Shown piece after piece: positions 1,932 through 62,763 of a stretch of 64,000 bases of DNA. The translations under genes and the position numbers were made by a program. Under the pieces are notes generated by a model, which was not told the origin of the DNA, did not search any database, and saw only the letters and a program-made list of their open reading frames with translations. Location of the stretch: contig OZ176051.1 of assembly GCA_964247055.1 (NCBI GenBank), positions 7,192,001 to 7,256,000 on the forward strand, in the 5' to 3' direction. Each line of letters opens with the position of its first letter. Positions within the stretch are counted from its first letter, which is position 1. Source of the DNA: Paragordius varius (taxonomy: Eukaryota > Animalia > Nematomorpha).

Positions 1932-4900
1932 CTACAAAAAAGAAGAAGACGTATAATACGTAACATAGTAAGGTCTAATTTTCATAACGGATCTTTCAAT
2001 CTTAATCCATTCTTGAGTTCGCGAATCAAACCAAGTAAGTCCAATATCCCAGCGCCCATTGAGATTGCATTTTTGGCAATGAGAATACCACCAACCTCCT
2101 GAATAATATTTAGCACAATCAACCGAACTAGCATCTTGATCGCTGAGAAAAAAAGTTATTTAAAAAAGTACAGTAAAAATTTAAATTATGCAGCGAACAC
2201 AAAACATGTAATAATAATAAATTTAAACGGATAAAACAATCTAGACCATATTCACTAGAAATGTAAATTGGTAACACTCTCAAATATAGAGCAAAATTAT
2301 AATTATACGGACAGTAAAAATAAACCATATTTTTTCTCAATAAACCGCTGTGCTTTTTTACTTAATTATTTACGTGAAATAGAATGCAGATTACCATAAT
2401 TTATATGTATTTTAAATTGTAATTAATTATTTTATATGGAAGGTTAAAAAAATATGGTTGTCTTATGAATAAAAATATTTGTCTTTATGGTCTTACGTTT
2501 TGTCTCAATTTTTACGGTACATAAAACATACAATAAAAACAAAATTATAAGGATAAATTTTTTCTAAAAAGCCCATATTTTTAACTCTTGTTCGCAGAGG
2601 ACTAGATATGTAAATTGGTAAACACTTTCAAAATATATTCAACCATTGTAAAAATAAAAGACAAGAATCAAAAAATGTAATTTGCTTGTTTCTCTTTTAC
2701 TTTTTTATTTTGTGTTTAACATTTTAATTTATACTGTTAACACCTAATAAGAAACCTACTCTAACAAAGTATGTTTCTGTTAAAAAAAATTCCACGCTAA
2801 TAAATACGTATTTATACTTTTCTTTAATAAGCTTCTTTGAACAGCCTTTCCTTGAAAAACTCAATTCAATTAATATTTGGAGATTAATATTTTATTGTTT
2901 ACCGATCTATGGTGCTAAATCGAAATCCGTTGTGATTCTCCATCAAACAATCCGAAATATAAATGATATCGCTATCATTTCTAATTTTCGAATAATATTT
3001 TTTTTGTAGACTTGAGCTAGAAATGTTTTCATTAACTTTAAAATCACTGTCCCGTTTCATTATATTATTGCTTTCTACATTATTTTCCACCTTTATGTAT
3101 GGTGCAACAGAGGAATTTATATTTTTGTCAAATTTTGTTGTAACATTTTTATCGAACAAGTAATTATCATCTATTTTAGATGTTGAATTGAACATGAGGG
3201 GATTATTATTGGATTTCTGCTGTAGAAAAGCTGTTAAATGTAATGCATAACCCTGATACTCTGAACCAATTTTAAAATCCATGTATTCAGCTCTTAGGTG
3301 TGATGATGAGGCATCCCACATATCTATCCTTAGAAAATAATATTTTTTCTTGCTAATGACTTTTTGTGTTTGAGAACCCTTGACTGAGTCTTTTAGATTG
3401 GCAAATTTCGTTCTCTTCCCAAGCGTTTCAGGAAAAATCAATTCATTAGCTTGATCGCGTGTTATTTGATGTATTATGTCATTGCCTAACCAAAAGTCGC
3501 CTAAAATTTAAGATAATAACAGCCATAAAATACCCACTACACCTAAATCAAAAATAAAATACACAGTAAAAATGAAATTACACGGACAAAAAGTTATTAC
3601 ATAAAGATAAATATATTTTTTTCAAAAGACAACAATACTTAACTATTCATATATAAATAATAAAATTACAATCGAAAAGTATGTGAATGATTGTGTTACC
3701 CAATATACATATCTATTTCGTACTTTGCAATTTACAATGAGTTATTATATTAAAAATATGATTTAAAAAAGATTTGTTTTTTTGTCCGTATAATTCCAAT
3801 TTTTACCTATATACTCATTAGATTAACTTTAAAAACTGTGAATAAAATTTAGTAAAAAAATATGGGAAATACCATTCAAATTTCCAAAACCATTTTTATA
3901 ATCCTTCCATGTTCGTGTAAAATTAGTGTCTCCTTTCGTTCTACGCTGAATGACAGTCCAACCTCCAATCTTTGGTATTGTGATTTCGGGTTCAAAATTT
4001 TTGTCCGTGCTGCTCTCTTTGAAGTTTTTATAGAGATTCTGCTTTTTTAGGGAATTCCGAATTGTATCTGTATTGTGTATGTCTTCCATATCGCAATAAA
4101 CCTAATATTGGTGATATAAATAAGGAAAATATACCATTTATAATTCAAATTAAGCCTTGAACAATTCAAATTCACCCTAAAAATAAATCATGTGTTTTCG
4201 GGCAGCTAATATAACTCCATATTAATAGGAAATATATTCTCATAGCATAGTATATTATTTTTTCAGTATTATAAAAAATTTTAACGTAATTTCCTTTTAA
4301 AAAAAATATAAAATAATATACGTAATTTTTAATCTTACACACATATAATTTATGGTGAATTTGAAATGTTTAAGGGTGAATTTAAATTGTTCTTGAGTGA
4401 ATTTGAATTGTTCAAGGGTGAATTTGAATTGCTCAAGGGTATTTGAACGGTAAATGGTATTTGATGGAACAATATTAATAATATCGGAAAAATTACATTA
4501 ATACACGACCCAAATTTACAATTGTTAGGTATATATTTGTTATTTATATTAACCAGTTTAAAAGTTAAATATTTTCATTATTAAACTTAAATATTTTAAT
4601 CCACTTTTATTAATTATATTCGAATATTGTTGTTGTTTTACGTATAATTTACATTTTAATTATTTAAAATATAATTATTACATCAAACACATTATTAATC
4701 AATATCAGTCCAAGATATTTGATAATAAAACATTGAAATTATATATAGTTATAATGTATATTACTTGAACAAAATGGGATTGTATTGTGTCTGTTAAATT
4801 TATTCTGTAGTTAGTATCAGCTGATACGGCAGAAGGATTAATTAAATATAGACCAGATTTATATTCAGCAATCTTATAATTCCAATCCATTGTACAATCT

Positions 4901-28334: not shown

Positions 28335-31300
28335 TGAAATATTTTTTGAAATATATATATAGGGATACATAAAGCCAAAGAACTGGGTATTAAACCTTTC
28401 CTATCCAACATCGACAACACCACCAATGGATATTACGTTATGATGTACATTAGTCAATTTATCCGCCTTGATAACACGTATCTGAGAAAGCGCATTCTTA
28501 ATGAAGAATTGAGTATAATATATATTAGAAAAGATATTTATTTAACAATATATTAGATGGCACTAGTATTTTGTGGGTGATATTCGTTAAATATTCAATC
28601 GGTTTAATTTTCGATATGGTTACAAGTTTCACACAAAATATAACTTTATTTACGTATTGGATAATTTTTTATTATCATTCATTAACTAATAACGTAATAT
28701 CTAGTGTGGCAGTAAATTTTGATTTACATTTAACAATTTAAGTAGAGAACAAATTACCCAATATTTTTAATATTATGTCTTAAAATTTTATTGTGTGAAT
28801 CTAGCCCACAATTTTGATGCCATTAAGCGTGATTTGAAAAAGACACCTGCAAAATCAGCTTCCGCTAACAATACTACAAACAACAACCAAATGAATGCGC
28901 TTAAGGCTCAAATACTTTCAAAACCTAAATTAAAATCGGTAACACAAACCCGTATTACACCTAAATCATTTACAACCGTATCATCAAATAATGTTTCAAA
29001 CATTAATTTTTCTCACGCAAAACTGAATCAATCGGTAAATTCAGTTGTTAAAACACCAACTATAAATTGTAATGGAGAAATGGTGGCTCATAATGGAATG
29101 CACGTTCCCTTGCAAAATAATACCACTAAATATAACAGTTCCCAAATCAACAATAACAACAACTCTGTTAATAAAGTCGCTCAGACTAAATGTAAATCAT
29201 CGTCTCCTTCTATGTTGAAAAATGATGGCCATACACATACCAATAAAATAAAACGGCTTAATGCAAGTCCTATGGATAAAAATGATTATAGAATGATTGC
29301 AGGTAATAAAAATTTGCCCAAATCCCCCAAAGATCTGAAAAATGGAATTGCTTCCAACAATATCAACCACATAAAAGTCGGTAAAAATGGGAAAGACAAT
29401 GGTCGAATAGAAGTTACTAGAAAAGTACATGATGCAACCCATAACGCTAATCAAAATGATTATCGTTCATGTCATAGTTTGCGTAAGAAAAATGATTGGA
29501 TTTTGTCAAAATATGCTGCTGCTGCATTGGACAATGGTTTAAAACAACCTCTTCCTAACCGTAATCCTAAAACTAATTATACGGTTAATAAAAAACTGGA
29601 TAAGAATCTTTCTTCTCAAATTAATGGCGAATCAACTCATGAAACAAATGGCCACATTGATAATTTTATGGATAACAATAAGCATACTTTGCATATTTCC
29701 CATGTGTTAATTTATCAAAGCCTAAAGCCGTTCCTTCATATCAATAAACTTTATGCGCTAGATTTTTCGGTCATTGATGAAAATAACCAGCAGTCTTTAA
29801 CCGATGTACAGGATTTCCTTCAGCCAATAATGATTGGTATTGGTAGATTTACTTAATATTTAATATTTTTGTTGTGTAAAACCTAATTTTTAAATCAAAT
29901 TGAAAGATTTATTAACTTAAATTATTATTAAAACACAAACACAATAAATTTCTTACTTTTGCAGGTAAGTTTTAGATACATTTGTTAAATTAAAATATTA
30001 AAGTCTTTCTTTTTATTTTCTAACTGGAAAAGTTTTTGGAAAATATTAAATAAGATGATTATACCGTTTATTTATTACAAATATTTTATGTAAGAGTTTA
30101 ATTCAAAACCTTAATTTACTACTTTTTTCCGAAAAAGTATTAATCTTTGCTATAATAATAGGACCTAATAGCGAAAAATCATTGGAATTCGATAAACACC
30201 CCACAACCTCACATCGATATCGGTTAAGTTTACGACCCCACGAAATTGGTATTTTCAAAATTAAATTAAACTTATACTGATTATATAAGGCATTGAAAAT
30301 ATGTTGCATTTTTTTAATTTAATATTTTATTAAAGGAGAACATATACTTCGATTTGTAATTGACGGGATACCAATTTGCGTGCTAGTTAACAAACTCATC
30401 AATGATGTTAATCCAAACGAGAATCCATTGTTGGATTTGCATTTCAAAACATTCGATGCTTCTAAAGTTATGTTTCAACCCCTTAGATACTGTGTTTTAG
30501 GGCAACCAGCAAAAATTTTAAGTAAGTCACATCTATGACAAAAAGAAAATATTACCATTTTTTTGTAATAATGTGATATAATATGCTAAATTTTTTTCAT
30601 TAAAGTAAGGGCCAAAGACGCAGGTGCCGGAAAATTGGAAGTATTCATCAATAATGGAGCTACTAAATCGTCTATTTTGGCCCTGGGTAACAAAATGTTT
30701 GAGGTTCAATTCATACCAACTGATACAAGCAAAATTAATTCATCGTCCAAGAATGAAACTGTGTTATCACAAGAAAAAAATATTAATACTGATAATACTA
30801 GCAGCATAACTAATGTTTGGAAATGGCAAACCGTTGAAATTCATTTTAATGGTGAAAATATTAAAGGTATATAATATCTCTAAAGCTTAGTCTAAAAAAC
30901 CAAAAACTTTTATTAGATTTTCCTATAAAAATACGCAACATTTATGTTTTAAAACAATATATATCAGTATTTATAACTTTTGTGAAATGATTTAGATTCG
31001 CCTTGGAAGTGTCCCTTAATTAATCCGGTTGATATAAAATGTAAGGGTAAAGGTATCGATGACCTTGGTCCATTTAAAGTGAAAACACCATTGTCATTTA
31101 CTGTTCGAACCAGTATTTGTACCCTTGATACTTCCGATCTTAAAGTGAGTTTTAATTAAAATTTGTTTACTACATAAGACATAAATAATGGATAAAATCG
31201 TAATTCCAGCTTTGTTGTATAAGATTTATGATAAAAATTTTTGTCACATTCTTATATATTTTAGGTGTCCATAACCTGCCTTCCATGTGCTAGAAAAGAG

Positions 31301-34300: not shown

Positions 34301-37300
34301 TATTAAATGATAACATCGGCGGTCAAACCTTAAAAGAGTTAAAAACTTATACTACTCTTAGTAAGTTAATTGATGATTGTCATTTTGTTAAATGTTTTAT
34401 TTTTGAAATCAAATATATCTATGCTAACATATTTAAATTGTATTCATTTGTGACAAAAAAAATTTACGGGTAATACTGGTTTTTGGGATAATGTATTTTA
34501 ACGAAATTGGGAAAAAGCGAATATTATGAATAAGGATAATGTTTAAATTTAATATACCATTTACTGTTCAAATTCACTCTTAAACAAATCAAATTTACCC
34601 TTGAACAATTCAAATTCACTCTCAAATAAATAACATGTTTTTTAAGATTAGAAATTACCTATATTTTTAAAAATAAAATTTTGTTTTAAATTAAAATAAT
34701 ACTGAAAAAATAATAAATTATGCCATAAAGATATATTTTGTATTAATAATGAGTTATATTAGTTCAAAAACTAATTTATTTTTAGGATGAATTTAAATTG
34801 TTCGAGGGTGAATTTGAATTGTTCAAGGGTGAATTTGAATTGTTCAAGGGTGAATTCTAATTGTTCAAGAGTGTTGAATTGTTCGAGGGTGAATTGGAAT
34901 TATTCAAGGGTGGATTTGAACTGTGAATGGTATAGTTCTAATTAATTTAATTAGATCAAGCATAGAATATAAATATAATGATATTTTTGAACTGTAAAAT
35001 AAATAGCTAAAATATTATTTTAAAATTTTCATTTGTCTAATATTTAACCCTTAACATCATAAACCCCCTTAACATTTTTTGAGTTAAAAAATCATTAGTC
35101 TAAGGCCGTATGAAAAATTTAAAGGGTTTTATTAAAATGATATATAAAATAAATTTTCTGTGATAATAGGGTTTTTTAATAACAAACGGTCATTATTATT
35201 TTTATAATCAACAAACATACACTATCATTTAGCTATCTTTTAACTGTTTTTGTTAAAATAATAGATACATACATTAAAACATCATTTTTAAGCTCATGTT
35301 AACCTCTTGATATGAGCGATATCAAATATTTAATCGTAAAAATTCATACAAAATTCATGGTTTTTTTAATTCATCATAATTTATGCATTTTCTTTATATC
35401 ATATATGGCCCAATAAATCATACTAGTTGTTCACCAAAAAAGGTTTTGTGTCATAATATTTATACAATAATACTTCAATAATATTTTATAAAAAAACATC
35501 TTTTTTTAATATATATATATAAATTGTTTAGTTGACGTTGAAATGGCGGGTGGGGATGGTCCTTTCGAAATAAAATTGAAGGATTGTAAGGCCTTAACCC
35601 AATACCAACAAAATGAGGCATCATCAACAGCCCATGTTGAAAAAACTTATTATGTAACCGCTAAACCTTACATAGGCATAACTGTCCATATAACACCTAA
35701 ACATTGTAATACTGATGCGATGCAAAATATCGAAACATCCGATAAGAATTACACTGAATTTAAATCTTGTATATACTGTATCAATATAAGTCTCTTTTAC
35801 AAACCCACTTCAACTCCGTTTATTGCTAATGCAATAAACAAAAAAACAGTGGATGTTATTGATTTGGGAATAGATCTTACATATTGGTATAAAAGTATTC
35901 CATTTCAAACTTTAAATAATTTGGGTGGACAAAATCGGCAAAGCATACAAAACAGCGCGAAAAACTTTGGATTCTCAATTGATATTCCCTCTCTTGATTC
36001 AGTTATAAGTGACATTAAAGAACAAAACAGACCACCTGCATTAATTGATGCACATATTTTAGCGTGTGAAAAAAATGACATCTCTCCCCAAAATGATTGG
36101 GCACCGGCTTATCGCCCCACTAATCTGAGTGTACTTTGTTTGTTTGATAAATCGATTGATAACGCACAAAATACCACTTTAAGGGACACGATAGAAGCAT
36201 TGAAATGTAAACCGGAATCTTTTTTGACTGATTCCATCACACAAACTAAAAACCATCATAAAAATATTAATCGAACATCAAATCTAGCTATCCCCTTTAC
36301 ATGTTCCATTGAAAATCCAGCATCTCAAAAAAATTGTAAAAATCCACCCATTTTATATACGGTTGGAGTAAGGAAAATCCCGAAAGACAAAATGTTTACC
36401 ATTTTCACTGATTGTAAATCTCTAACAGACTGGTTATTGAACCAAACCCAATCTAAGCTGGACAAAAATAAATTAATCTCCGAATATTATGAACAATTGG
36501 TGGCATTTAATATAAGTTTTGTTCCGTGTGAGGTGGGACTTTATCAACTAGCAATGCATAAAACTCCGACAAGCATGAAAGTAATAATTTTTTAATATAA
36601 GACTCAAAAAATTATGTATTAATTTAAATTCTAATTATATATATATTAACTCTTTAGTCAATCGAAGATATTGAATCATCCCATATGTTAAAAATACCTG
36701 TCCATGTATACGATTGTTCCAAAGTCATCATTAAACCATTAAAGTGCTCTAGAGACATTAAAAACGATGAAAACGTATCATATATACCAATCAAAGAACA
36801 TGGAACCATTTTAGGTAAATCAGAAATTGCTGGATTCTAATAATTTTTTTAAAACCCAGTACCGTTAAAATTTTGGTGTTGCGGTTAAATTGTTTTATAA
36901 TCAAATGATATTCGGATTCGTTTTTCGTTTAAAATTAAATAGTCAAATCAAAATTAGAATATATTTATGTTATAATAATAATAATAATAATAATAATAGA
37001 AAACCCAGACTATTAAAATTTGGGTAAATTGTTTGAACTTGAATATATTGTTTTTAACAATCATTTTTTTTGAATTGTCCTTTTTGTTCCAAAATAACTT
37101 AGTCACGGTTCTAATTTGTGATCCTAAATAAGATCTTTGAATTGACCACAATTTAGTTTAACAACCGTTGACACAATTTTTTAATAATCATAAATTTCCC
37201 TTATTTAATAGGTTAATCAAATAATTTTCTGCGGTAAGCTTAAGAAATTTTTAAAATTATTTCAGGGACGTTAAAGAAAGTTACTTACCTTATTTTCTGT

Positions 37301-40300
37301 AATTTTTATATTAGAATATTTAAAAAATTGTATCCAAAACTATATATATAATTTAAGTTACCTAATGGATTGGCCAATTTTTAGGTGTTCAGCATTAAAA
37401 ACCCCATGAGACTATAAATGCACCTTATTTTGTCCAATATTTATCAAACTTTCTCATTCTCTTGATAAACTCAAGTTTATATAAAATCTCGTATAATTTG
37501 CTAAAAATACTTCATTTTAAGCTATAACCATAAAATTATTATTGTTGTAAAAAACCATAAAAAAATTTGTTCGGGTTTTCCCACATTAATCTTGTGTTAT
37601 ATCTTTTATAAATTTTATCTTATCTTTATTCTATAAAATATAAATAAATTCTGGCAAAATATTTGTTGCAGTATTTTGAGCGTAAACATCTGGATAAAGG
37701 GATAATAAATTAGTATTCTTTTAATTAATATCCTAATTATTTTTTAATTTTATTTATGATATTTTTCCTGTTATCCTGATTATTAGATATTAATTAGTAA
37801 AATCTCTGAATTTACTTTATTTAATATTATATCTCACATGATTCAAGTTTTTCTGAAAGCAACCCTAAATCATAGAAATAATATTTGGTATTGGACTATT
37901 TATATTGGTAAATGGAGAAAAAAAAAAATATTTTGTTTGAATTAAAACGATATTATACATTTTTTTCCTTATAATTACCGATTTGGCGGTTTACTTTATA
38001 GTTATGGCATTTTAATGGTTGCTTATTTTACACTATAGTTGGGCAATTCGCAACACAGTAATGTATGGAAAAAAATGTGAAATAAGCAACTATTAAAATG
38101 CATATCTTTCAATATTCAACAGCGCTTTGTAAATGTATAACAGTTTTACACATCACATTGCTTCGGTTTTCTTCGTTAATTTCATCGGAGTTATATTTGT
38201 ATTTATAATCTCATACATATTATGTGCATTTTTTTGATGCAACAATGTGTATTATTATTATATTTACCATATGAAAAGGTTATTCAAACAAAATAAAAAA
38301 ACCGAAAGAAAGAGAGAATCTAATCATATAAGCAAAAAAATAAACTTAGAATTATCGGTTTTATAGTTTTTTTTACTATTTGTTTGCAAATATAACAATA
38401 TTTTTACAATTTTTTCTTTGAGTACATATTACTTGGTAATATAAATACTCACTAATCTTTATTATCATAAACATATCAATTTCCAAAAAAATATGTGTTA
38501 ATTTTTTTTGATCAATTTTTTGATATGGCCTTGCCCTTTAACACAATTTTTTTTTTCGTTCTAAATTTTTGAAAAAAATAAATTTGAATCATCAATGCGC
38601 TTACCAAACAATAATTCCAATGCTCTCCTTGACCAACCGAAAAGGAGTGCTTTGAACCAAGAGTTATTAAGCGTATTTCAAAAGCGCAAAGATTTTGCAC
38701 TTTTAAAACGAACCTCCCCCATAAAACCATTATTCGATGAAACTGCTAATTCTAATTTTTACAAATATCAGCATAACGGTAATTGATTCTGTATACATAT
38801 AATTGTTTTTATTTTTGTCTAGGTCAATCATAAGCTATTGTGTCCTTAAATAATTCGATAACATCCAATCTTTTTCCTTCCAATTACTCTTATTTTAAGC
38901 ATCAATCCTATATTTCTCTGTTTTTGTTTTTTTATCATATATATTACTAAAGGGTTGAACAAGAGCTCAATTTACTATTTTTTATGTGTTTGCTGGTTAT
39001 TTAGTTATAAAATATAGAGTTATACAATATAATCAATTCCTCGCAATCTTAATACATTTTTCAAATCTTAATTATTGATATATGCATATGAATATAGTTG
39101 ATTGCTCCAAAGCCGGGGGCTGTAAAACATTGGACATTAATATTGTGAATCCTTTAGCAGCAGCTAATGAGGAATCCGCCATCTCCCACGAAATAGATTA
39201 CAGTGATGCCGATCACCATAGGTATAAGGTTACGTTTGTGCCTGAAAGCTTGGAACCGTATTACCATGTCCATATCTCCATCAACAATGAACCAGTCAAA
39301 GGTAATGATAAATATAGGGCTTGCTTTTAAACGAATTTTAGTCCGAATTTTTTGGTTGATTATGAATGATAGGTTTTCGCTTAAATTTCAAATACGAAAT
39401 GGGAGCTTGTGTGGGTGATTTTGCATGAGTTTATTGGAAATCCAATTTTTCCGTTATCTCTTTATGAATGCCGAGAGTTAAAGTTTTTATTAGGTTAAAT
39501 CCAATTTAAGCCTTACTCCTTAAACTAAAAGGAAATAAAGGACACTCAAAGCTGTGTATTTATTTATAATTCTTAATCATACTATTTGGTATTTTTCATT
39601 TTTAATGAATTTTTTAGCGTTATATTGGTGTTGATCCAACCAATAGTATAAACCTTTTAATGCATTTTACGTTTTTTGGATTTTATATTGATACACATAT
39701 TTTTTTGATACAAAAACATATATATGGGATTAAAGGGTTTATAATGATTAAAATAAAATTATGGACGCTGGTTTAAATAGCCAACCAAATATCTAATCAT
39801 ATCGATTGCTATTAAGAATGTGAATTCTTTCGCAATGAATAACATGTGAAAAAAAATATTTTTATTACATTTTTTTGAATAATAAAAATTGTAGATTCAT
39901 AAAACCCAAATAAAAAATCAACAGTTTTCATCCGATTTCATACCATAATTATTGTGTTATTTCGAGCCTATGTAAATCCATTCTAACTTTTAAAGTTTTG
40001 ACTAATAAAACCAGTTATAATAGTTACAAAAAATTTATATAACCTATATACATATTACAGGGAGTCCATTTCTAGCTAAATATTGTCCAGATTATGTTGT
40101 TGACGAGAACGACAATCGCTGCTTAGATGACCATAAAGGAAAGGTTGATATGAGTGAAAGTATTCGACATATAGATAGCATTGATGGTTCGGCTTACGAT
40201 TCAAGCGCTATTCGCCAAAAAATAAAAACGGAAAAATCTTGTCCAGGTATTAATAATATACGATTAGATATTTAAAATTGTGCTGTATTATTTAAAACAA

Positions 40301-49300: not shown

Positions 49301-52300
49301 ATAGTATCCCCACATATGAAATTGTTGGGAACGCTAGTTTAGACATGTTTTCCGTCTCATATGTCCCAATGGAAATTGGTGAATACAAAGTGTTGATAAC
49401 TTTAGAAAATGATTCTGATACAAAACATGGTTAGTTAAATGAATTATTATTATATTATAATTTTTTATTACAACTTACATATATCAGGTCCTTTTACGGT
49501 CAAAATTTGTGACTTAACCAAAATAAAGCTTATAACCCCGGTAAACAATATGAAAAAATTGGTGATTGATCAAACTTCTCGCATTCTTATTGATTGTAAC
49601 AATGCCGGTCCTGGTAATTATATTTTTCAAAATTATTTCTTATTTATTTTTATAAAATCTTATTAAAAAACGCAATATTAAATGGATTTTAACTCTTAAA
49701 AAAATTAATCAAAATATATCCTAAACAAAAACATTATATAAATAATAAATGAATGCTCTTTTTAAAGGTCATTTGGAAGCATTCTTAAAATACCTACCCA
49801 GTTTATCTGACATGAAAAAATTTGAAGGATTGAGTAACGTGGGTGATAAAGATGAAATATCTGATGCCGTTGTTCAGAAAATGACATCACAGGATTATTC
49901 TATATTACTTACGGCTAAAAAATTAGGTATAATTTATTTTTATTTTTTGGTAACTAAATATAATTATAAACTGCTTATTTATTTTTTTATGCCTTTGGTT
50001 TGGATTTTACATACTATAGGAAAAAAAGTTTCAAACTAAATGGTGCACCGACTATAAAAATAAATTTGCCAAAAATTTTCTCGGCTCGAATTTTAATCTT
50101 TTTTTCAAATTGTTCTGATCTCCGTCTTTTTTTTATTTGGTAACTCCATTAACATAACATTCTAATTAGTACAATTCTTCACATTTTAATATAGATTTAT
50201 GATTTTAAGTTCCATTTTTAATATATTAGGTGAATACCTTTTACACCTTAAATGGAATGGTTATGATTTACCAGAATGTCCGTATCTTATTGAATGTGTA
50301 GATAAAGTAATTGAACAACCGTTAGTATTCAAACAAACTACAGTTGATACCGATGATATATTGTCAATCCTTAATAAATACCTTTCGGATGTTAAAATAT
50401 CGCAAGATTGGTCCAATTATTTCACCTTAAATGAAAATCTAAAATCCTTCTTACCCATCGATAAACCATATTCATTTCAAATTGATATGGCGAAATTGTT
50501 TGAAAGTTATATATAATTTTTAAATACTATCGAAATTCAAATATTTATTTATATTTTGACTAATTCATTAAATAATTATGTTAACAGAATTAAAATCCGA
50601 ATGTCCCAATATCGAAACTTTCAAGCCAAATTTATTCCCTAGTATGTATATCGTTTCGACAAACCCTAAAGATACGGCTGATGTAAAAGAAAACCCATTT
50701 TTATCATCAAGCTCAATACATCAAACTGTTATAACGTACGAATTCATAATAAGGCGTAAAGGTTAGTTTGATGGCAAAAAAGTTTTCATATTAAAAAAGA
50801 TTTTGCATAAATATATACTTTTCCATTAATTGTTTAGGACAATATTATTTGAATCTCGGATACCCGAATACTCAAAGTGAATTGGCTAACAAGTCGCCTA
50901 CTGATGGCGAATCATTCAAAACCGGTTTTATACATATATTCGAATCTCCATACAAACTTAATTGTTTCACAAAACTGTCTACATCACTTCCATCATGTAA
51001 CGTTACTGACGTACAATCTGATAAAAACAACGGCACTAAAAATGATTTTTCCCCAATAGAATCTCAATCATTCATAAAGAGTAGTCATAACATGGAAAGT
51101 ACACCTTTAACGAGTGTATCCAAGGAAAATATACTCAAAAAAATGAGTAATATGTTTATCTTTTATAATACTACATATTATACTATATTGGGCTATTTTA
51201 AATTAGCATCTTTATATGTTTAATCCGAGAAATATCGTTTATAAAAATAACGTTTGATAAAAAATTTATTATCTAGGAATGTTCATTTATGACATAAAAT
51301 GTTTCCAGAAAAATATGTAAACATATGCTTTTAAAAGGTGATTTTTTGTCCAGATTAAAGAGAAAAATACGTGAATATGTTTGATTTTTTGTTCAGATTA
51401 AAGAGAAAAATACGTGAATATGTTGTTTCTTTACTATTTATTATTTTTGCGAAATGTCATTAGAGTCTAAATCATTGTCGTCCGAACATCGCAACTTCTC
51501 AGGCCCCTGTGATGTAGTTAATGCAACAAATGCCTCTTGTGTCAAAGTCTCAGGACCTGGTATCAAAAATGGTGTTTTATCAAACTTTAATAGTCAATTT
51601 TCGATCGATACAAAAGGTGCATGTGCTGGCCAATTGACAGTTAAGATTCGTGGTCCAAAAAGTAACTACGCGCGTGATTTATTTTTTAATTTCTGATTTC
51701 GTTTGGTTTGCAAAGATGGAATTTCAAAATATTAAAAAAATTCGTTCTTACATATATTGTCATGATTTAGTAAAAAAATTAAATTTTACTCAAATATCAG
51801 GATTAGATGCCATTTTGTGGTTAAAATTCTTTGGGACTAGTGATTATTTTATATTATGCTTTTATATATTTGTTTAACTAGTTTTAAATTTATAATTAAG
51901 CCTATTTAATCTTGAAAACTGAAAATGCCTGGAGAATAGGCAACTTACCAAACTTTTTTGCCATACAAAATAAAGAATTAACATCTATATATATGTATTT
52001 GGCTAGGCGCTTTTCACGTTCGAATGAAACGAGATCCTGTACGAGACAGAGTTATTCATTGCGAATATCAGCCAACCGAAGTTGGTCATTACACAATTCA
52101 TATCACGTGGTCTGGTAACCATGTACCAGGTTCGCCATTCAATGTTAGCATTTATGGAACATCTGAAGATTATTTAGCGGTGCAATCGGGACAGACGCAT
52201 TATTCAAGAAAAATAAACAGTAATCAAATTCATTTTTTAACAATTAATTTTGGCTAGAGAAATGAATGAATAATAAAAATAATTTGCGAAAAATATTTAA

Positions 52301-53017
52301 AAAACATGAGTCGATAACACGGTAATAGGAAAAACTCAATCGGGTTAACACGTGGGCTATAAGTAGCAATAAAATATTATGTTTTTTAATTATTTGTAGA
52401 TATAACTTTATGTTTTTCCCTTCATTGTTTTCGTATTAAACCAACATTATCCATGATTATTTTTATATAACATTTTAGAATCACCGACAAACTCATCCCA
52501 TACCACTTCGGCCGACGATCTAGATCGTTTTATAACGCAAGCATTTTCATCCGATAATTTGGGTGATTTAGGACTTCTTACTGCAACAGAGAGTAGTGGG
52601 GATGGAACGACCACCTCTCTTAGTAGTAATCTTAAAAATGATAAATTTGGTAGTCATCAGAGTCGGAGTGAGAGCTCTTCGTTGCGCAAAAAAAAATTTG
52701 ATACCATTGAACGGTATGATGGGAACTTTGTACTAAGTGCCCCAAGCCACATAAATCATGCAAATATCAGCAAAACGGATACTCTTTTTACGAGTAATAG
52801 ACCATCTTATCAAAATGGATTTTCGAATAATGCCCTAAATTCATCCAAAACTTATGATAGTTTATTGTCACCTCCTAAACAAGTGGATTCAGATACTGCT
52901 GCCTATAATTCGGAAACTTTGAAAATGTCGTCAACTCATAAAAATAGTTTGAAACAACAAAAGCTACTGTTTGCGAAACCGTCTATACTCTGTACCCCGG
53001 ATCCGTTATATAACTAA
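21207..53017 (+). CDS. jbug: Jitterbug-type filamin: three calponin-homology domains plus many filamin Ig repeats; about 50 exons, about 4,400 aa (approximate)
   Basis: CH exons 21207-21447 (IVFQNWIKLHVK), 25252-25507 (LLWAIIVNYQI; INNLTDDWADGKLL), 27618-27969 (AMLTYLSLF; LLAWINEKL), 28139-28283 (SWVDGMLLEALV), 28363-28512 (VMMYISQF). Filamin-repeat motifs recur from 30336 (DAGAGKLEV, VDARKAGVGNMEI, VDTSRAGPG, GSPF). The last repeat (51464-51661, 52007-52219: FSIDTKGACAGQLTVKIRGPK..FHVRMKRDPVRDRVIHCEYQPTEVGHYTIHITWSGNHVPGSPF) resembles the recalled Jbug C-terminus. Final exon 52479-53017. Some internal splice sites and the start codon are uncertain. Confidence 0.85.
22003..24176. mobile_element. 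2.17-kb foldback / long-TIR non-autonomous DNA element in filamin intron 1
   Basis: Ends ta|cagtcatgtagactttatattg and caatataaagtctacatgactg|ta (TA duplication). Inverted arms align for about 0.9 kb, with about 6 mismatches in the first 88 nt. Interior has roughly 100-bp subrepeats with the core acaggtaaaaattgcgg. No ORF. Confidence 0.92.
27302..27583. mobile_element. MITE family B copy
   Basis: ccattaactcc..aaattcaccc at left, gggtgaa..gtaaaggg|ta at right; in a filamin intron. Confidence 0.7.
34557..34930. mobile_element. MITE family B copy with expanded 21-bp repeats
   Basis: ta|ccatttactgttcaaattc ... gaactgtgaatgg|ta; about six tandem gggtgaatttgaattgttcaa units at about 34790-34925. 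Confidence 0.88.
36970..36997. repeat. (TAA)n microsatellite
   Basis: Direct reading; intronic. Confidence 0.9.
38595..38778 (+). CDS. Candidate alternative first coding exon of the filamin gene (CH-less short isoform)
   Basis: ATG-started 61-codon ORF in intron 36815-39097. It ends AAC G|GTAATT, a phase-1 donor that fits the phase-1 acceptor at 39098 (G+TT GAT TGC = V-D-C-S-K-A-G). No AG acceptor lies in the roughly 80 nt before the ATG. Confidence 0.6.
48133..48389. mobile_element. MITE family B copy
   Basis: ta|ccatttacagttcaaattc ... tgtaaatgg|ta; fills most of the filamin intron 48017-48406. Confidence 0.85.
51343..51425 (+). repeat. Tandem duplication of about 41 bp
   Basis: tttttgt(c/t)cagattaaagagaaaaatacgtgaatatgtt occurs twice; intronic. 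Confidence 0.9.
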
Positions 53018-56296: not shown

Positions 56297-57006
56297 TAGG
56301 GTTGTGCATTTGACTGCTTTTTCAAAAATGTCCGGTCAGACCTGGTCAGATAATGGTCATGACCACGGTCATGACCACTTTACAGTAAATACGATGCGAT
56401 ATTGGTTTGTGAAAATAATGTTCGAACGACACTTGCGTTCCACAATAATGTCATGTTTTTTCCTAAAAGTTTATATTTATACATTTTTTTATATTTACAA
56501 TATTTTCATCAAATTTAATCAAGAATTTTGTTTTGAAATAAATTTTGCCACATTCTTGTGGCCTTCTGAATCTTCAATTTCATAGCTTTTATTAAAGGAT
56601 ATTTCAAATTTAATTTTACCTAGTTTGTTTTACACTTTCTTTCATCATTGTAATATCCAATTATAAAATGTTCTTACATTTTATTGGTTCATATATAAGG
56701 AATAATCGCATATTTTGCAAAATGCTTGATTGTTTTTCCAAATAACTGGATATGCTAAATGCTAATGTTATAAGGATGCATGTCTAACAATTTTATATTG
56801 TTAAATACGCATATTTAAATATTTAATTTATATTTCTTAAAAAGTATATTGAAAAGCAACAAAATCTTACTATCTCTCTTCCAAAAAAAATTACCAGCAA
56901 TTTTTAAAAACAGCTGTTTTTTTAATGACCATGGTCAAAAAATAAACACTGACCTGGTCATGACCCGGTCAATTGACCGGGTCATGACTTGGTCAGCACA
57001 ACTCTT
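56297..57006. mobile_element. Non-autonomous TIR element (hAT-like) with ggtcatgacc subterminal motifs
   Basis: Ends tagggttgtgc and gcacaactctt; clusters of ggtca/tgacc motifs inside both ends; AT-rich non-coding centre. Target-site duplication not resolved. Confidence 0.6.
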
Positions 57007-57710
57007 GTAGACCCATTCAAATCCAAATATCGAAAAAATATAATCATTAATGAATGCCCCAACAATAGCTTCGCCCTTTTTTTAAATTAGGCCCCCAATT
57101 CGGGCCCACCCCGAGTAAAAAACGCGTTTTTTTTGAAAACACAAGTGCACAAAAATCGTCTCTTTGAGACAATTTTCCGGAGAACGTGTTGGACCATTCA
57201 ATTTCAAATATGATGTTTGCTTAGTTGTTTTCGATTGCGCCGAACAACGTCGTCTCGCTTTTTCAATTTAGGCCCTATTTTTACCCGCTCCCCTCGTAAA
57301 ATGCCATTTTTTTCAAAAAACAAAGTCCACAAAAATAATTTTTTGAATCTATTTTTCGCCAAAGGTATGAGAAAAAATTCTGTTAAAAGGCAAAAATTTT
57401 AGTCAAGCGTTTCTTTATGATAGCTGCTGGGTAAGGAGCTACCCGCTAAAACTGATCCTTCATGTGGCTTGTGATCTGTTTCCGGACCGGTAGACCCATT
57501 CAAAACCAAACGAAAAATTATAATCATTAATGAATGGCCCCGACAATACTTTCGCCCTTTTTTTAAATTAGAGCCCCGATTTGGGCCCATCGCGTTTTTT
57601 TTGAAACAAAAGTCCACGAAAATCGTGTCTTTGATACAATTTTCCGGAGAACGTGTTCGAACATTCAACTTCAAATATTATTTTTGTTTAGTTATTTTCG
57701 ATTGCGCCGC
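57007..57710 (+). repeat. Tandem repeat with a unit of about 480 bp (one and a half copies, plus a stub at about 56275-56296)
   Basis: gtagacccattcaaa..aatcattaatgaatg..ttttccggagaacgtgtt..ttttcgattgcgcc occurs at 57007 and again at 57490. Confidence 0.8.
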
Positions 57711-58754
57711 CCCCCTCCCCCCAAGAAGTCCGAAGGACTCCCTTGGGCTGATTAGCAGCACGAGATTTACGCTAGTAATTGATAAAAATAGTTATTAGAT
57801 ATGTCATAGTATATCATTCAATTGTTGTTAAAATAATCATTCAGGCACCTACATCAAGTTCTAATCATTTCTGGATCCGTGAAATTATATACTGATGATT
57901 TTTAACTAAATATTTAAATAGCCCCTTTACTTCGGCCAGATCCCTAAAGTTATGTGAACGGATAAGCTGGATAGGCTGATTTCTCAGCACAGTACTGGGT
58001 TTTCGAAACTTCGCCTGGACTGCGCTGACTTTTGCACTGCTTTTTGAAATTAAAAAAAATATTTTTAAATATTTTATTATATGATTTACCATTTATTACA
58101 AATAAACTATTGTAGAATTTGATAAAGTACTTTTGTTAAAATAACCCCAATGTGTAAAAAAATAATGGTTCATTTTACGGTAAAAAACTAACATTGGTCC
58201 ATTTTTAATTGATTCATATTTTATTCTATGCTTGATTTATACAGGAAATCGGGTTTGGACCGGTCAAACCGCTAATGAATGCAGCCATTCGCGCAGTGTC
58301 GGAACTATAAATCTCAGACTCTACTGCAAGATTTGGTCTAAATGGCCTTTCCACTTCAGGGCTTCCGCAAAAGAGGCCTTAAAATTTAAAATAACACAAA
58401 TATTAATGATATTTTAGTAAAAATATGCTTTTAAAGTTTTTTTGTTTCATTTTAGTTTCCATTAGTTTAAGTTTTGTTTATTTTTTTTTAAATTGCAGTG
58501 TGTTCGCAAAAAAAATATCCTCAAAGAATATATATTTTAATAGGGAGAAGATTATCATGCTGATTTTGGTTGTGGAGCTTACGAGTGATTTAAATGTGTC
58601 ATTATACTTTTGTGGCTTCCATGTCAAAAACGGCATAATTTATGCACATTTTTTGAATTTGGAACTAAATGCTTCATTCAAAAAAATATTTCTAATATAT
58701 ATCATAAAACTACATATAAAAAACAAAACAATATTTTTGTAAAATGTTAAATAT

Positions 58755-59352: not shown

Positions 59353-60750
59353 AAAATTAAAATTTTATGCCTTTTTATTTTGTGTAGTTTATGATATTTT
59401 AGTAATATTTTTTAGAATAAAGCAATTAGCTTTCACCAAAAAATTTTATTTAACAAAATGTGGACATGCCATTTTTTTATGTGGAACACTTACCCCAAAA
59501 GTGTTAACATTCTTATATTGCTCGTGAGGGCCAAAAATAAAAGCACCGTGAAAATTCTGATATTCCTATTATGATATATTTACCAGGATATTTTTTGTAC
59601 CCTATCGGATGAAGCTAGGAGTCGTTTCTTTTTTTGCCAGATGTTTTATTAAATAAAAAACATTTTTAACGAAACTTAATTATATTTTCAAATTATAAAT
59701 TAGCAATAAAATAAATTAATCTATTCAATAAATTTATAAAAATCAGATATTAACACCGGAATCATTTGTCATTTTTGCATCGTTTCATAACTTTTTAATG
59801 TTATAAATGCTACATATGCTAATTTTTTTATTTACAAGTTTTCACTTAAAATTATTTGTTTTTTGGCTATTAACGCACATTATTTATTTATCTTAAACTC
59901 AAAAATATCATTGGAATAAAGGCCAAAAGTTTTGAAATTGAATGTAACCAGTCTAAAACTAAAAACGGTTTCGGCATCCCTGATATTGTTTAATATTTTT
60001 AATTGTTTTTTAATGTGTTTATAAATAGTAAACAATATAATGTGATAATAATAAACCAAAATCTGGTGTAAAAAATAGGCAAAGTATGTTTTAATATTAT
60101 ACTGCGTCTGGGTCAAAAATAACTGGTCACATATAATTAGAGCAAAAACTTGGAATATCAATGTCGGGAAAATCGAAAGCACCAACGTGGTAAAATCAAA
60201 ATGCTTTGGATATAATTAAAAACCAAGATAACGATGCAACAGTTGATATCCATTACGCCCAACCGTACAAGCTGTCGAAACTGGACTTACGAAATAGCGA
60301 TAGACTCTGATTTAAGCTACAACAATATAGTTTATAAATTCTAAACCTATTATTTGAATATAACATAAATACTATATCAATGCGATTTTTTAAAAAAAAT
60401 GCATGTATGCTTGATTTCTTATAATTAAAAAAACTTAAATGCAGTTTAATAATATTAAAATTCAACAGTAGACCAGAATTCATTTATTATAGTAAAATTA
60501 AAATAGAGACAAAGCATAAAAGGAAAAGACTAATATTTTTTATGAACAATCATGTTAAATTTTTCGGGGGCTGGAATGGAAATACCATTGATTTTATATA
60601 ATTATAATCATAAAGGTTAATAAGGATAATCAGAGATCAAAAAATATGGTAAAACATTATTAGTCTGTACCTTTTTTATTAATTTCAATTTGATCTAAAA
60701 AAATCCATATTTTCACCTCTGACCCAACATCATACTTTAATTTATATATA

Positions 60751-61055
60751 CCATTTACAATTCGAACTAACCTTGAACAATTCAAATTCACTCTCTAACA
60801 ATTCAAATTCATCCTATAAATAAATTATGTTTTTCGGGTTAATATAACTCATCATTAATATGAAATAAATTTTTACATTATTTTTTCAGCATTATATTAA
60901 TTTTAAACAGAATTTCATATTTTATAAATAATAAAAGATAAAGGTATTTTTTAATCCTAATGAAACACATTAATTATTTTAGGGTGAATTGGAATTGTTC
61001 GAGGGTTTTGAGGGTGAATTTAAATTGTTCAAGGGTGAATTTGAACTGTAAATGG
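60751..61055. mobile_element. MITE family B copy
   Basis: ta|ccatttacaattcg ... ctgtaaatgg|ta. Confidence 0.85.
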
Positions 61056-62763
61056 TATATTAAACTGATGGCATTGCATAATCCATATTTAATATTAAAT
61101 GAATATTATAATAAAAAAAATTACCATATACGTAAATACTGAACATTATACAATATTTAATTTGAAAAAAATGTGTTTTATTAAAGGACATAAAAATTTT
61201 TGGCAAGTGAAAAAGTTGTATTGAATATTTTCCATGTTCTATTTACACAACTGATAATATCATATCTTAACCAAAAAAATGTTATTGATTATATGGTCTT
61301 TTTATATGTATTTTTGATATTACTCCGTAATTATTTATTTATTTCGATTAGAAAAATATTTTTCCCGAATTAATCCGTTTAAAAATCGTAACTTCTGAAA
61401 ATCCAATTTATCCATATCGTATTGCAATTATGGTATTTATTTTGGGTATTCAAAAATTAATTAATTAAATTGCAATATAAATTTATATATATTTGTAAGT
61501 AAACACCAAATTTTATAAAAATTAAACATATTTGTAAAATTGTTCGGAATGCTAGTGTTTTTTACGAGATTGTGCGATAAACGCCCATCAATTTTAAAAA
61601 TTTTATTTATAAAATTTATATTAAAAAAGAAAACAATTTCTATAAAACAATAGATTCTTACAAAATTATTTGCCACTTACAAAAGTATTAAGGCATAAAT
61701 TTCTATAATATCTAACAAAGATTATCTTTATCAATTGATAATTTGAAATTTAAGTTTAAAATATTTATGAATTAACCCAACTAAGCACACTTAAACCCAC
61801 CATAAATTTTTTGTTAAAAAAATAAAAAAATACATTAATAAATAAATATTATGTTTCAAAAGTATATGTATATATATTTATCATTTCTGTTAATAATGTA
61901 ACAATAAGATATGGTATTATTTGATTAATATATGACGGAATTGACTTTAACCTACTTCGATAACAAAAGTAAAGTAGATATATTGAAACAAAAAGTATCA
62001 AACAAATATTTATTCATACATTATTATTATTTAATAAATTAATATTGTAATTTCATAATAATAAAAAGAAACCTTATATTAATAGTTTTCGATACATAAA
62101 AATATTTGTATCCAGTTTTTATTTGTCATAAAAAAATATATTTTGAAGTCCTGAAAATTTTTATTGGGCAAACATTTTTTCCCGAAACTTCGTTTATTTT
62201 AAATTTAACACGCATATAATATCAAGAATTTTCAATTTAATTTCATATTTTAGGGTAATTATATAGTTTTACATTTTTTAATTATTTGCGAAGAAATTAT
62301 GTGAGATGTACTTAATTCATTTTTTAATAGAATCCCTGATGTGATCCTATAATAATTCGCTATAAATTTCTAAATAAAAGTATGTATGAAATTTTTTTAC
62401 TAAACAAATCCACGATAATAATCATAAAATGATAATCGAAATATATATAATTAATTATTCATATAATCAATATTTTAGCAAAAAAAATAAAATAATTACC
62501 ATATTTTTTTACTATATAGTACTAAAGTTGTTTTGTTTCTAAGAGACAACTAACTATCAAATGAATCCCGATCATATAGAAATACGATTCCTACTAAATA
62601 TTAGAAACATCCATGTCGCGATATACGTATAAAGCCTTACAAAACTACAATTTTTTGTTTATTATGAATTTTTCAACAAGATCTTACACATATATGAATT
62701 ATATCAACCTGATGGATAATATATTATTTTTAAACCGAATGTCAAAATTTTGATTCTGAAAAG

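Follow-up and report, generated by a model that had tools for sequence, protein, structure and literature searches.

Filamins dimerise through their last Ig repeat, and filamin isoforms that lack the actin-binding domain are generally regarded as actin-independent scaffolds. We know of no filamin in which promoter choice swaps one actin-binding module for another within the same gene. In Drosophila, the filamin gene cheerio gives rise to FLN90, an isoform made from a separate, shorter transcript of 3 kb; it comprises the C-terminal Ig repeats without the N-terminal actin-binding domain (PMC5173320). The initial annotation of the DNA described here had invoked a short Drosophila isoform of this kind in proposing a hidden alternative first exon within a filamin intron, and FLN90 bears out that precedent. 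The peptide encoded by the proposed exon also invites comparison with WH2 domains of the WASP/WAVE/WIP type and with the short peptides of the beta-thymosin and ciboulot type.

Here we describe the candidate exon within a window of 64 kb (C2:7192001-7256000, the whole stretch of DNA analysed), which belongs to a genome of 110.5 Mb in 44 contigs. The window is very AT-rich, with 18-33% GC in 2-kb bins. We propose that the candidate, at 38595-38778, may be a genuine alternative 5' exon, specific to its lineage, in a filamin gene that has diverged strongly, a reading of the genomic sequence that we favor tentatively.

Results

The gene around the candidate exon

As judged from its translated repeats, the host gene is a very divergent filamin. 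Two Filamin/ABP280 Ig repeats scored above the Pfam cut-off of 26.9, one at 51982-52254 (40.4 bits) and the other at 51418-51693 (29.1 bits), and the hallmarks of the repeat were seen in many more exon-like ORFs between 30.3 and 52.3 kb. A Ser-rich tail closes the gene, which terminates near 53017. At the other end, CH-like strings at 25.2-28.4 kb are visible by eye only, and the CH assignment rests on these strings; the exon pieces of this interval, searched piece by piece, gave no Pfam CH match. A spacer exon of 350 aa lies at 28795-29856. The initial annotation had placed WH2-like motifs at the N-terminal ends of both the long and the short isoform, which does not apply to the long isoform, as its LKKT strings sit after the CH region.

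Frame, donor and splice junction of the candidate exon

The candidate and the adjoining parts of the gene are arranged as follows.

36658-36814, plus strand: normal upstream exon, encoding the first strands of an Ig repeat; donor TAG/GTAAAT at 36815, phase 1
36815-39097, plus strand: intron holding the candidate exon; 2,283 nt, wider than any other gap that separates exon-like ORFs of the gene
38595-38778, plus strand: candidate alternative first exon; starts with ATG, 61 codons plus 1 nt (phase 1), 184 nt
38640-38678, plus strand: codons of an amphipathic helix, residues 16-28 (KRSALNQELLSVF), predicted by co-folding to lie in the actin cleft between subdomains 1 and 3
38703-38714, plus strand: LKRT, an LKKT-like tetrapeptide in the translation (residues 37-40), outside the confident co-fold contacts
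38779-38786, plus strand: donor GTAATT, then directly the in-frame stop TGA (38784-38786), which ends the unspliced 63-aa ORF (38595-38786)
39098-39301, plus strand: downstream exon common to both starts, phase 1 at both ends; Pfam Filamin (PF00630) match at 39100-39300 with E 6.4e-4, from model position 28 of 93

The frame of the ATG at 38595-38597 is open from position 38565 onward and closes with the stop at 38784-38786. The donor of the candidate reads ACG/GTAATT at 38779, and its core is identical to that of a likely real donor of the same gene, CTG/GTAATT at 49614. Exon 39098-39301 is preceded by ...atatag and followed by GTAATG. The donor at 38779 and the acceptor at 39098 are both in phase 1, which allows an in-frame join to the Ig-repeat exons, and the junction codon (G+TT) is identical for the candidate donor and for the normal donor at 36815. 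An ATG-started exon at 38595-38778, lying in a 2.3-kb filamin intron and carrying a phase-1 donor that fits the next exon, had been claimed in the initial annotation; its coordinates, its frame, the RSAL at residues 17-20 and the LKRT string were all confirmed.

In a transcript that starts at the candidate, the CH region would be missing, as would the 350-aa spacer exon and approximately 6 kb of Ig-repeat exons (30.3-36.8 kb). By a rough tally, which is not a gene model, the exon-like ORFs downstream of 39098 sum to about 2,000 to 2,300 aa. The CH-less isoform of roughly 2,400 aa that had been put forward agrees with this in its in-frame join and in its order of size; the description as merely CH-less falls short, since the product would also skip the spacer and the Ig exons and would start mid-repeat. 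Exon 39098 begins at position 28 of the 93 positions of the Filamin model, so that the first Ig repeat of the short product would be without its first two strands.

Composition, coding signals and chance expectation

The candidate could be an unused ORF that arose by chance where a long AT-rich intron is slightly richer in GC, with its WH2-like look and its co-folding result both coincidental. We regard this reading as rather unlikely, and the base composition argues against it. The GC content of the candidate exon is 35.9%, compared to 22.9% and 23.8% in the flanking intron, while the neighboring exons range from 31 to 43%. The segment 38556-38805 is the sole non-exon GC island of the gene: every other 184-nt window with a GC fraction of at least 0.34 (25-53 kb) overlaps an exon-like ORF. 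Moreover, a good donor stands in phase exactly where this island ends, a further point against a chance ORF.

The codon usage of the candidate points the same way. Using a log-odds score trained on the long exons of the gene, we obtained 0.30 bits per codon for the candidate, within the range of 14 real small exons (0.19-0.47). The signal is strand specific, as the ORF on the opposite strand of the GC island scored 0.009. About 3 of 52 antisense chance ORFs outscored the candidate, which ranked about fourth. Conversely, two other measures are in keeping with a chance ORF. Purines occupy codon position 1 at a frequency of 0.51 in the candidate, compared to 0.59-0.68 in 10 real exons, a weak bias that falls below all ten. 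In addition, the ESM Atlas language model gave the candidate a low recognition score (1273), in the range of shuffled sequences. The position of the junction inside an Ig repeat also favors a chance ORF.

The rates at which such ORFs arise by chance are not small, whether simulated or empirical, and this too speaks for the chance reading. In a second-order Markov simulation of the intron, an ATG ORF of at least 180 nt with a phase-1 GTAA donor appeared in 1.7% of trials, and one of at least 150 nt appeared in 3.4%. The empirical rate is higher. On the opposite strand of the 64-kb window, GTAA donors accompany five ATG ORFs, in two cases in phase 1; from these two antisense cases, about 0.15 to 0.6 such ORFs would be expected over the introns of the gene (approximately 14 kb). 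The minus strand of the very intron that holds the candidate carries two ORFs of chance length, at 36954-37151 and 38512-38730 (65 and 72 aa), a further point on the side of chance. Taken alone, the candidate ORF with its donor is not beyond chance and is only moderately more than chance would give. The LKKT-like string weighs against coincidence: L[KR][KR][TV] occurs three times in the 28,164 residues of the window ORFs of at least 40 codons, or approximately once in 9,000 residues. Two of the three occurrences fall within the filamin gene, at the start of the spacer and in the candidate exon.

Copy number and homologue searches

The candidate stretch is single copy in the genome, both as DNA and as protein, and hence belongs to no repeat family. 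An origin from a repeat family found elsewhere in the genome, raised in the initial annotation as an objection to the exon, is ruled out by this result. We also rejected the candidate as a duplicate of the LKKT region of the long isoform, since a BLASTP comparison with 28771-29853 gave an E value of 3.5.

A search of 1.84 billion representative proteins with the 61-aa peptide retrieved no homologue. The sole match, P0001, was rejected as a relative despite an E value of 2e-7, as it is a tandem-repeat artefact, 799 aa long and translated from a tandem repeat of about 60 aa. A word search with the peptide returned no candidates, which says little for a short, fast-evolving tip, and a word search with the 82-aa downstream ORF returned none either. 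Neither the 350-aa exon product nor the 63-aa ORF was on record by exact look-up. The ESM Atlas search with the candidate gave no usable match, the PDB sequence search gave chance-level matches only, and an exact scan of metagenomes with 34 nt of the exon gave 0 matches. The lack of relatives and of a Pfam match counts in favor of a chance ORF. As a side observation, the case of P0001 illustrates that short Lys/Leu-rich queries can pull repeat artefacts at E 2e-7.

These searches bear as well on a non-coding or relic origin, which we consider improbable. Under this reading, the stretch would be an intronic enhancer or promoter, a non-coding or nonsense-mediated-decay exon, or a decayed former exon, and its frame would be incidental. 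A GC island unusual among the introns of the gene, both strands open across that island and a weak 3-base periodicity would all suit such an element. The Rfam search over 37800-39400 yielded no match on the candidate, only sub-threshold hairpin matches elsewhere, and comparison of the candidate with the filamin repeats and the rest of the gene showed no similarity; both results argue against this origin. It also leaves unexplained the coincidence of an ATG, an in-phase donor and an actin-cleft helix.

Predicted actin binding of the candidate peptide

We compared the 61-aa peptide with the WH2 domain by profile and by spacing. Pfam WH2 (PF02205) did not match the peptide, nor did any other Pfam family whatever at E values up to 10. 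A genome-wide scan with PF02205 detected three sites; all three lie outside the window, on another contig. Canonical motifs are present at two of them (RSALLSQIRKGIQLKHV and SNLLSEIHQGIKLKKT). At the third, where the match has an E value of 5.99 and falls below the family cut-off, no more than the helix is visible before the match ends. The candidate has the RSAL start and carries a Leu at the conserved Ile position of canonical WH2 motifs. From Leu24 to the Leu of LKRT, it spans 12 residues, compared to 5 in the canonical WH2 motifs of this genome, and is thus 7 residues longer. As read from its sequence, the candidate peptide is not a WH2 domain by either profile or spacing.

Co-folding of the peptide with a nematomorph actin, that of Gordionus (P0002), scored 0.81 in each of three runs, while the best of three controls scored 0.01 and the controls for this actin pair ranged from 0.00 to 0.01. 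In a calibration that excludes peptides, and in which a pass may mirror likeness to solved complexes, 51 of 78 solved complexes attained the mark, as did 2 of 108 mismatched pairs, which scored 0.34-0.59; for eukaryotes, the corresponding numbers were 39 of 65 among solved pairs and 2 of 126 among unrelated pairs. At least 49% of contacts agree between the runs, with a partner pLDDT of at least 50. Confident predicted contacts join peptide residues 16-25 and 27-28 to actin residues 142, 145, 147, 166-168 and 344-354, which we take to be the cleft between subdomains 1 and 3, the known seat of WH2 and similar helices. The candidate peptide is thereby predicted to grip the barbed-face cleft of actin. 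Support for the WH2-like motif of the initial annotation is mixed: its predicted helix scores well in the actin cleft, but the Pfam WH2 model does not match and the linker is about 7 residues longer than in the canonical motifs of this genome.

The actin cleft attracts many amphipathic helices. If the candidate were a chance ORF, its score could be understood from the Lys/Leu-rich amphipathic helices that are common in AT-rich ORFs and that the model would readily dock into this cleft. Against this, the score of the candidate stands far above those of the mismatched pairs that passed, and the controls stayed near zero.

The unspliced 63-aa ORF might also be a nested, stand-alone small gene for a thymosin-like, single-motif actin-binding peptide, its donor being coincidental; its own stop two codons past the donor, a predicted actin-binding helix independent of filamin and an exon-like composition would fit, but a right-phase GTAA donor within the last few codons has a chance of approximately 3% (our estimate from base composition), Pfam thymosin and WH2 matches are absent, no small homologous protein was present in the databases searched, and we judge this reading very unlikely. 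An internal cassette exon was rejected outright, as there is no AG between the upstream in-frame stop (38562) and the ATG, and the sole in-phase internal AG (exon start 38662) has no pyrimidine tract and would insert 39 aa into an Ig repeat.

Other features of the intron, window and genome

Several further features were recorded in the course of the analysis. The intron that holds the candidate also contains a perfect (ATA)9 microsatellite at 36972-36998 and the following element.

38007-38101, unstranded: palindromic repeat element about 500 nt upstream of the candidate exon; arms at 38007-38032 and 38076-38101

The arms of this palindrome are 26 nt long and 92% complementary, and they enclose a 43-nt loop; the RNA fold has an energy of -37.5 kcal/mol (z -6.2). 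The palindrome gave sub-threshold Rfam matches to plant miRNA families. The family is abundant: of 1,088 first-look candidates, the 40 that were scored gave 88 matches across many contigs, and its copies are often facing pairs approximately 100 nt apart. The palindrome looks like a MITE-type repeat.

Another filamin intron carries a 21-nt tandem repeat at 34784-34924 (6.9 copies, consensus AGGGTGAATTTGAATTGTTCA), which translates as NLNCSRV units. The same units occur in ORFs at 60660-60791 (minus strand) and 60960-61142 (plus strand), which marks the repeat as a dispersed minisatellite. Elsewhere in the window, minus-strand ORFs at 2899-4089 contain fibrinogen-C-terminal-like strings (GGWTVIQRR...KDYKNGFG and FSTIDRD) and represent a neighboring fibrinogen-related gene. 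A GC-richer block at 56830-58452 (up to 45% GC) holds near-duplicate minus-strand ORFs at 57082-57207 and 57399-57674, both starting with MKLN..TRSPENC; the block is probably a repeated element or a tandem duplication.

The best actin gene of the genome lies on the same contig (C2:5809830-5811066) and consists of two exons separated by an intron of about 106 nt. The protein encoded by its second exon is 99% identical to actin of Gordionus sp. m RMFG-2023 and approximately 79% identical to ordinary animal actins. The actin coding DNA is about 80% identical between this genome and Gordionus (GCA_954871325.2), and the flanks do not align. The matching actin gene of Gordionus sp. m has no intron and occurs twice, approximately 30 kb apart. 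From these comparisons, the genome probably belongs to a nematomorph other than Gordionus sp. m.

Discussion

Our favored reading remains that the candidate is an alternative 5' exon of the filamin gene. According to this model, an internal promoter in the largest intron of the gene would drive the candidate exon, and its donor at 38779 would be spliced in frame to the exon at 39098. Neither the CH-type actin-binding region nor the long spacer would be part of the product, and the first block of Ig repeats would be absent as well; it would retain, on the order of 2,000 aa, the distal Ig repeats together with the C-terminal tail. At its new N-terminus, the amphipathic helix (residues 16-28) is predicted to dock in the hydrophobic cleft on the barbed face of actin, like WH2 and related motifs. 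The short isoform would then hold actin in another way rather than lose actin binding altogether.

The matching phase, the donor, the GC island, the codon score, the single copy, the co-folding result, the rare LKKT-like string and the precedent of FLN90 all count for the exon and make it a good candidate. On the other side stand the chance ORFs that are not rare, the weak purine bias, the low recognition score, the lack of a homologue and the partial Ig repeat. A much bolder proposal, which we consider unlikely, is that the short isoform is real and, with filamin dimerising via its last Ig repeat, displays a pair of cleft-binding, WH2-like helices on a dimer that is long and flexible. Filamin would in this way change from a crosslinker of F-actin to a scaffold for actin monomers or barbed ends, or to a nucleator of filaments.

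If the exon is real, promoter choice would alter how a crosslinker engages actin and not just whether it does so, as a CH-type, filament-binding domain would be replaced by a WH2-like helix that binds monomers or barbed ends. The locus would also provide a clean case of a young, lineage-specific coding exon born in an intron of a fast-evolving parasite genome. If instead the candidate is a chance ORF, it would serve as a warning that peptides from AT-rich ORFs can score high with actin and that controls from the same genome are needed.

Compared to WH2 domains (PF02205; WASP/WAVE/WIP-type), the candidate peptide has an RSAL-started amphipathic helix, a predicted seat in the subdomain 1/3 cleft and a later LKRT that resembles LKKT/V. 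It differs from them in the absence of a Pfam match, in the 12-residue rather than 5-residue spacing and in the position of LKRT outside the confident contacts. With the beta-thymosin and ciboulot-type peptides it shares a short length (63 aa for the unspliced ORF), a single helix predicted to bind the cleft and an LKKT-like string; unlike these peptides, it has no sequence match to the family, and its phase-matched donor suggests splicing into filamin. The putative isoform resembles FLN90 of cheerio as a filamin form without the N-terminal actin-binding domain. Unlike FLN90, it would retain a much larger part of the protein (on the order of 2,000 aa), and its own N-terminus is predicted to bind actin by another motif. 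Relative to FLN90, the possible novelty of this locus would be an isoform-specific actin-binding tip.
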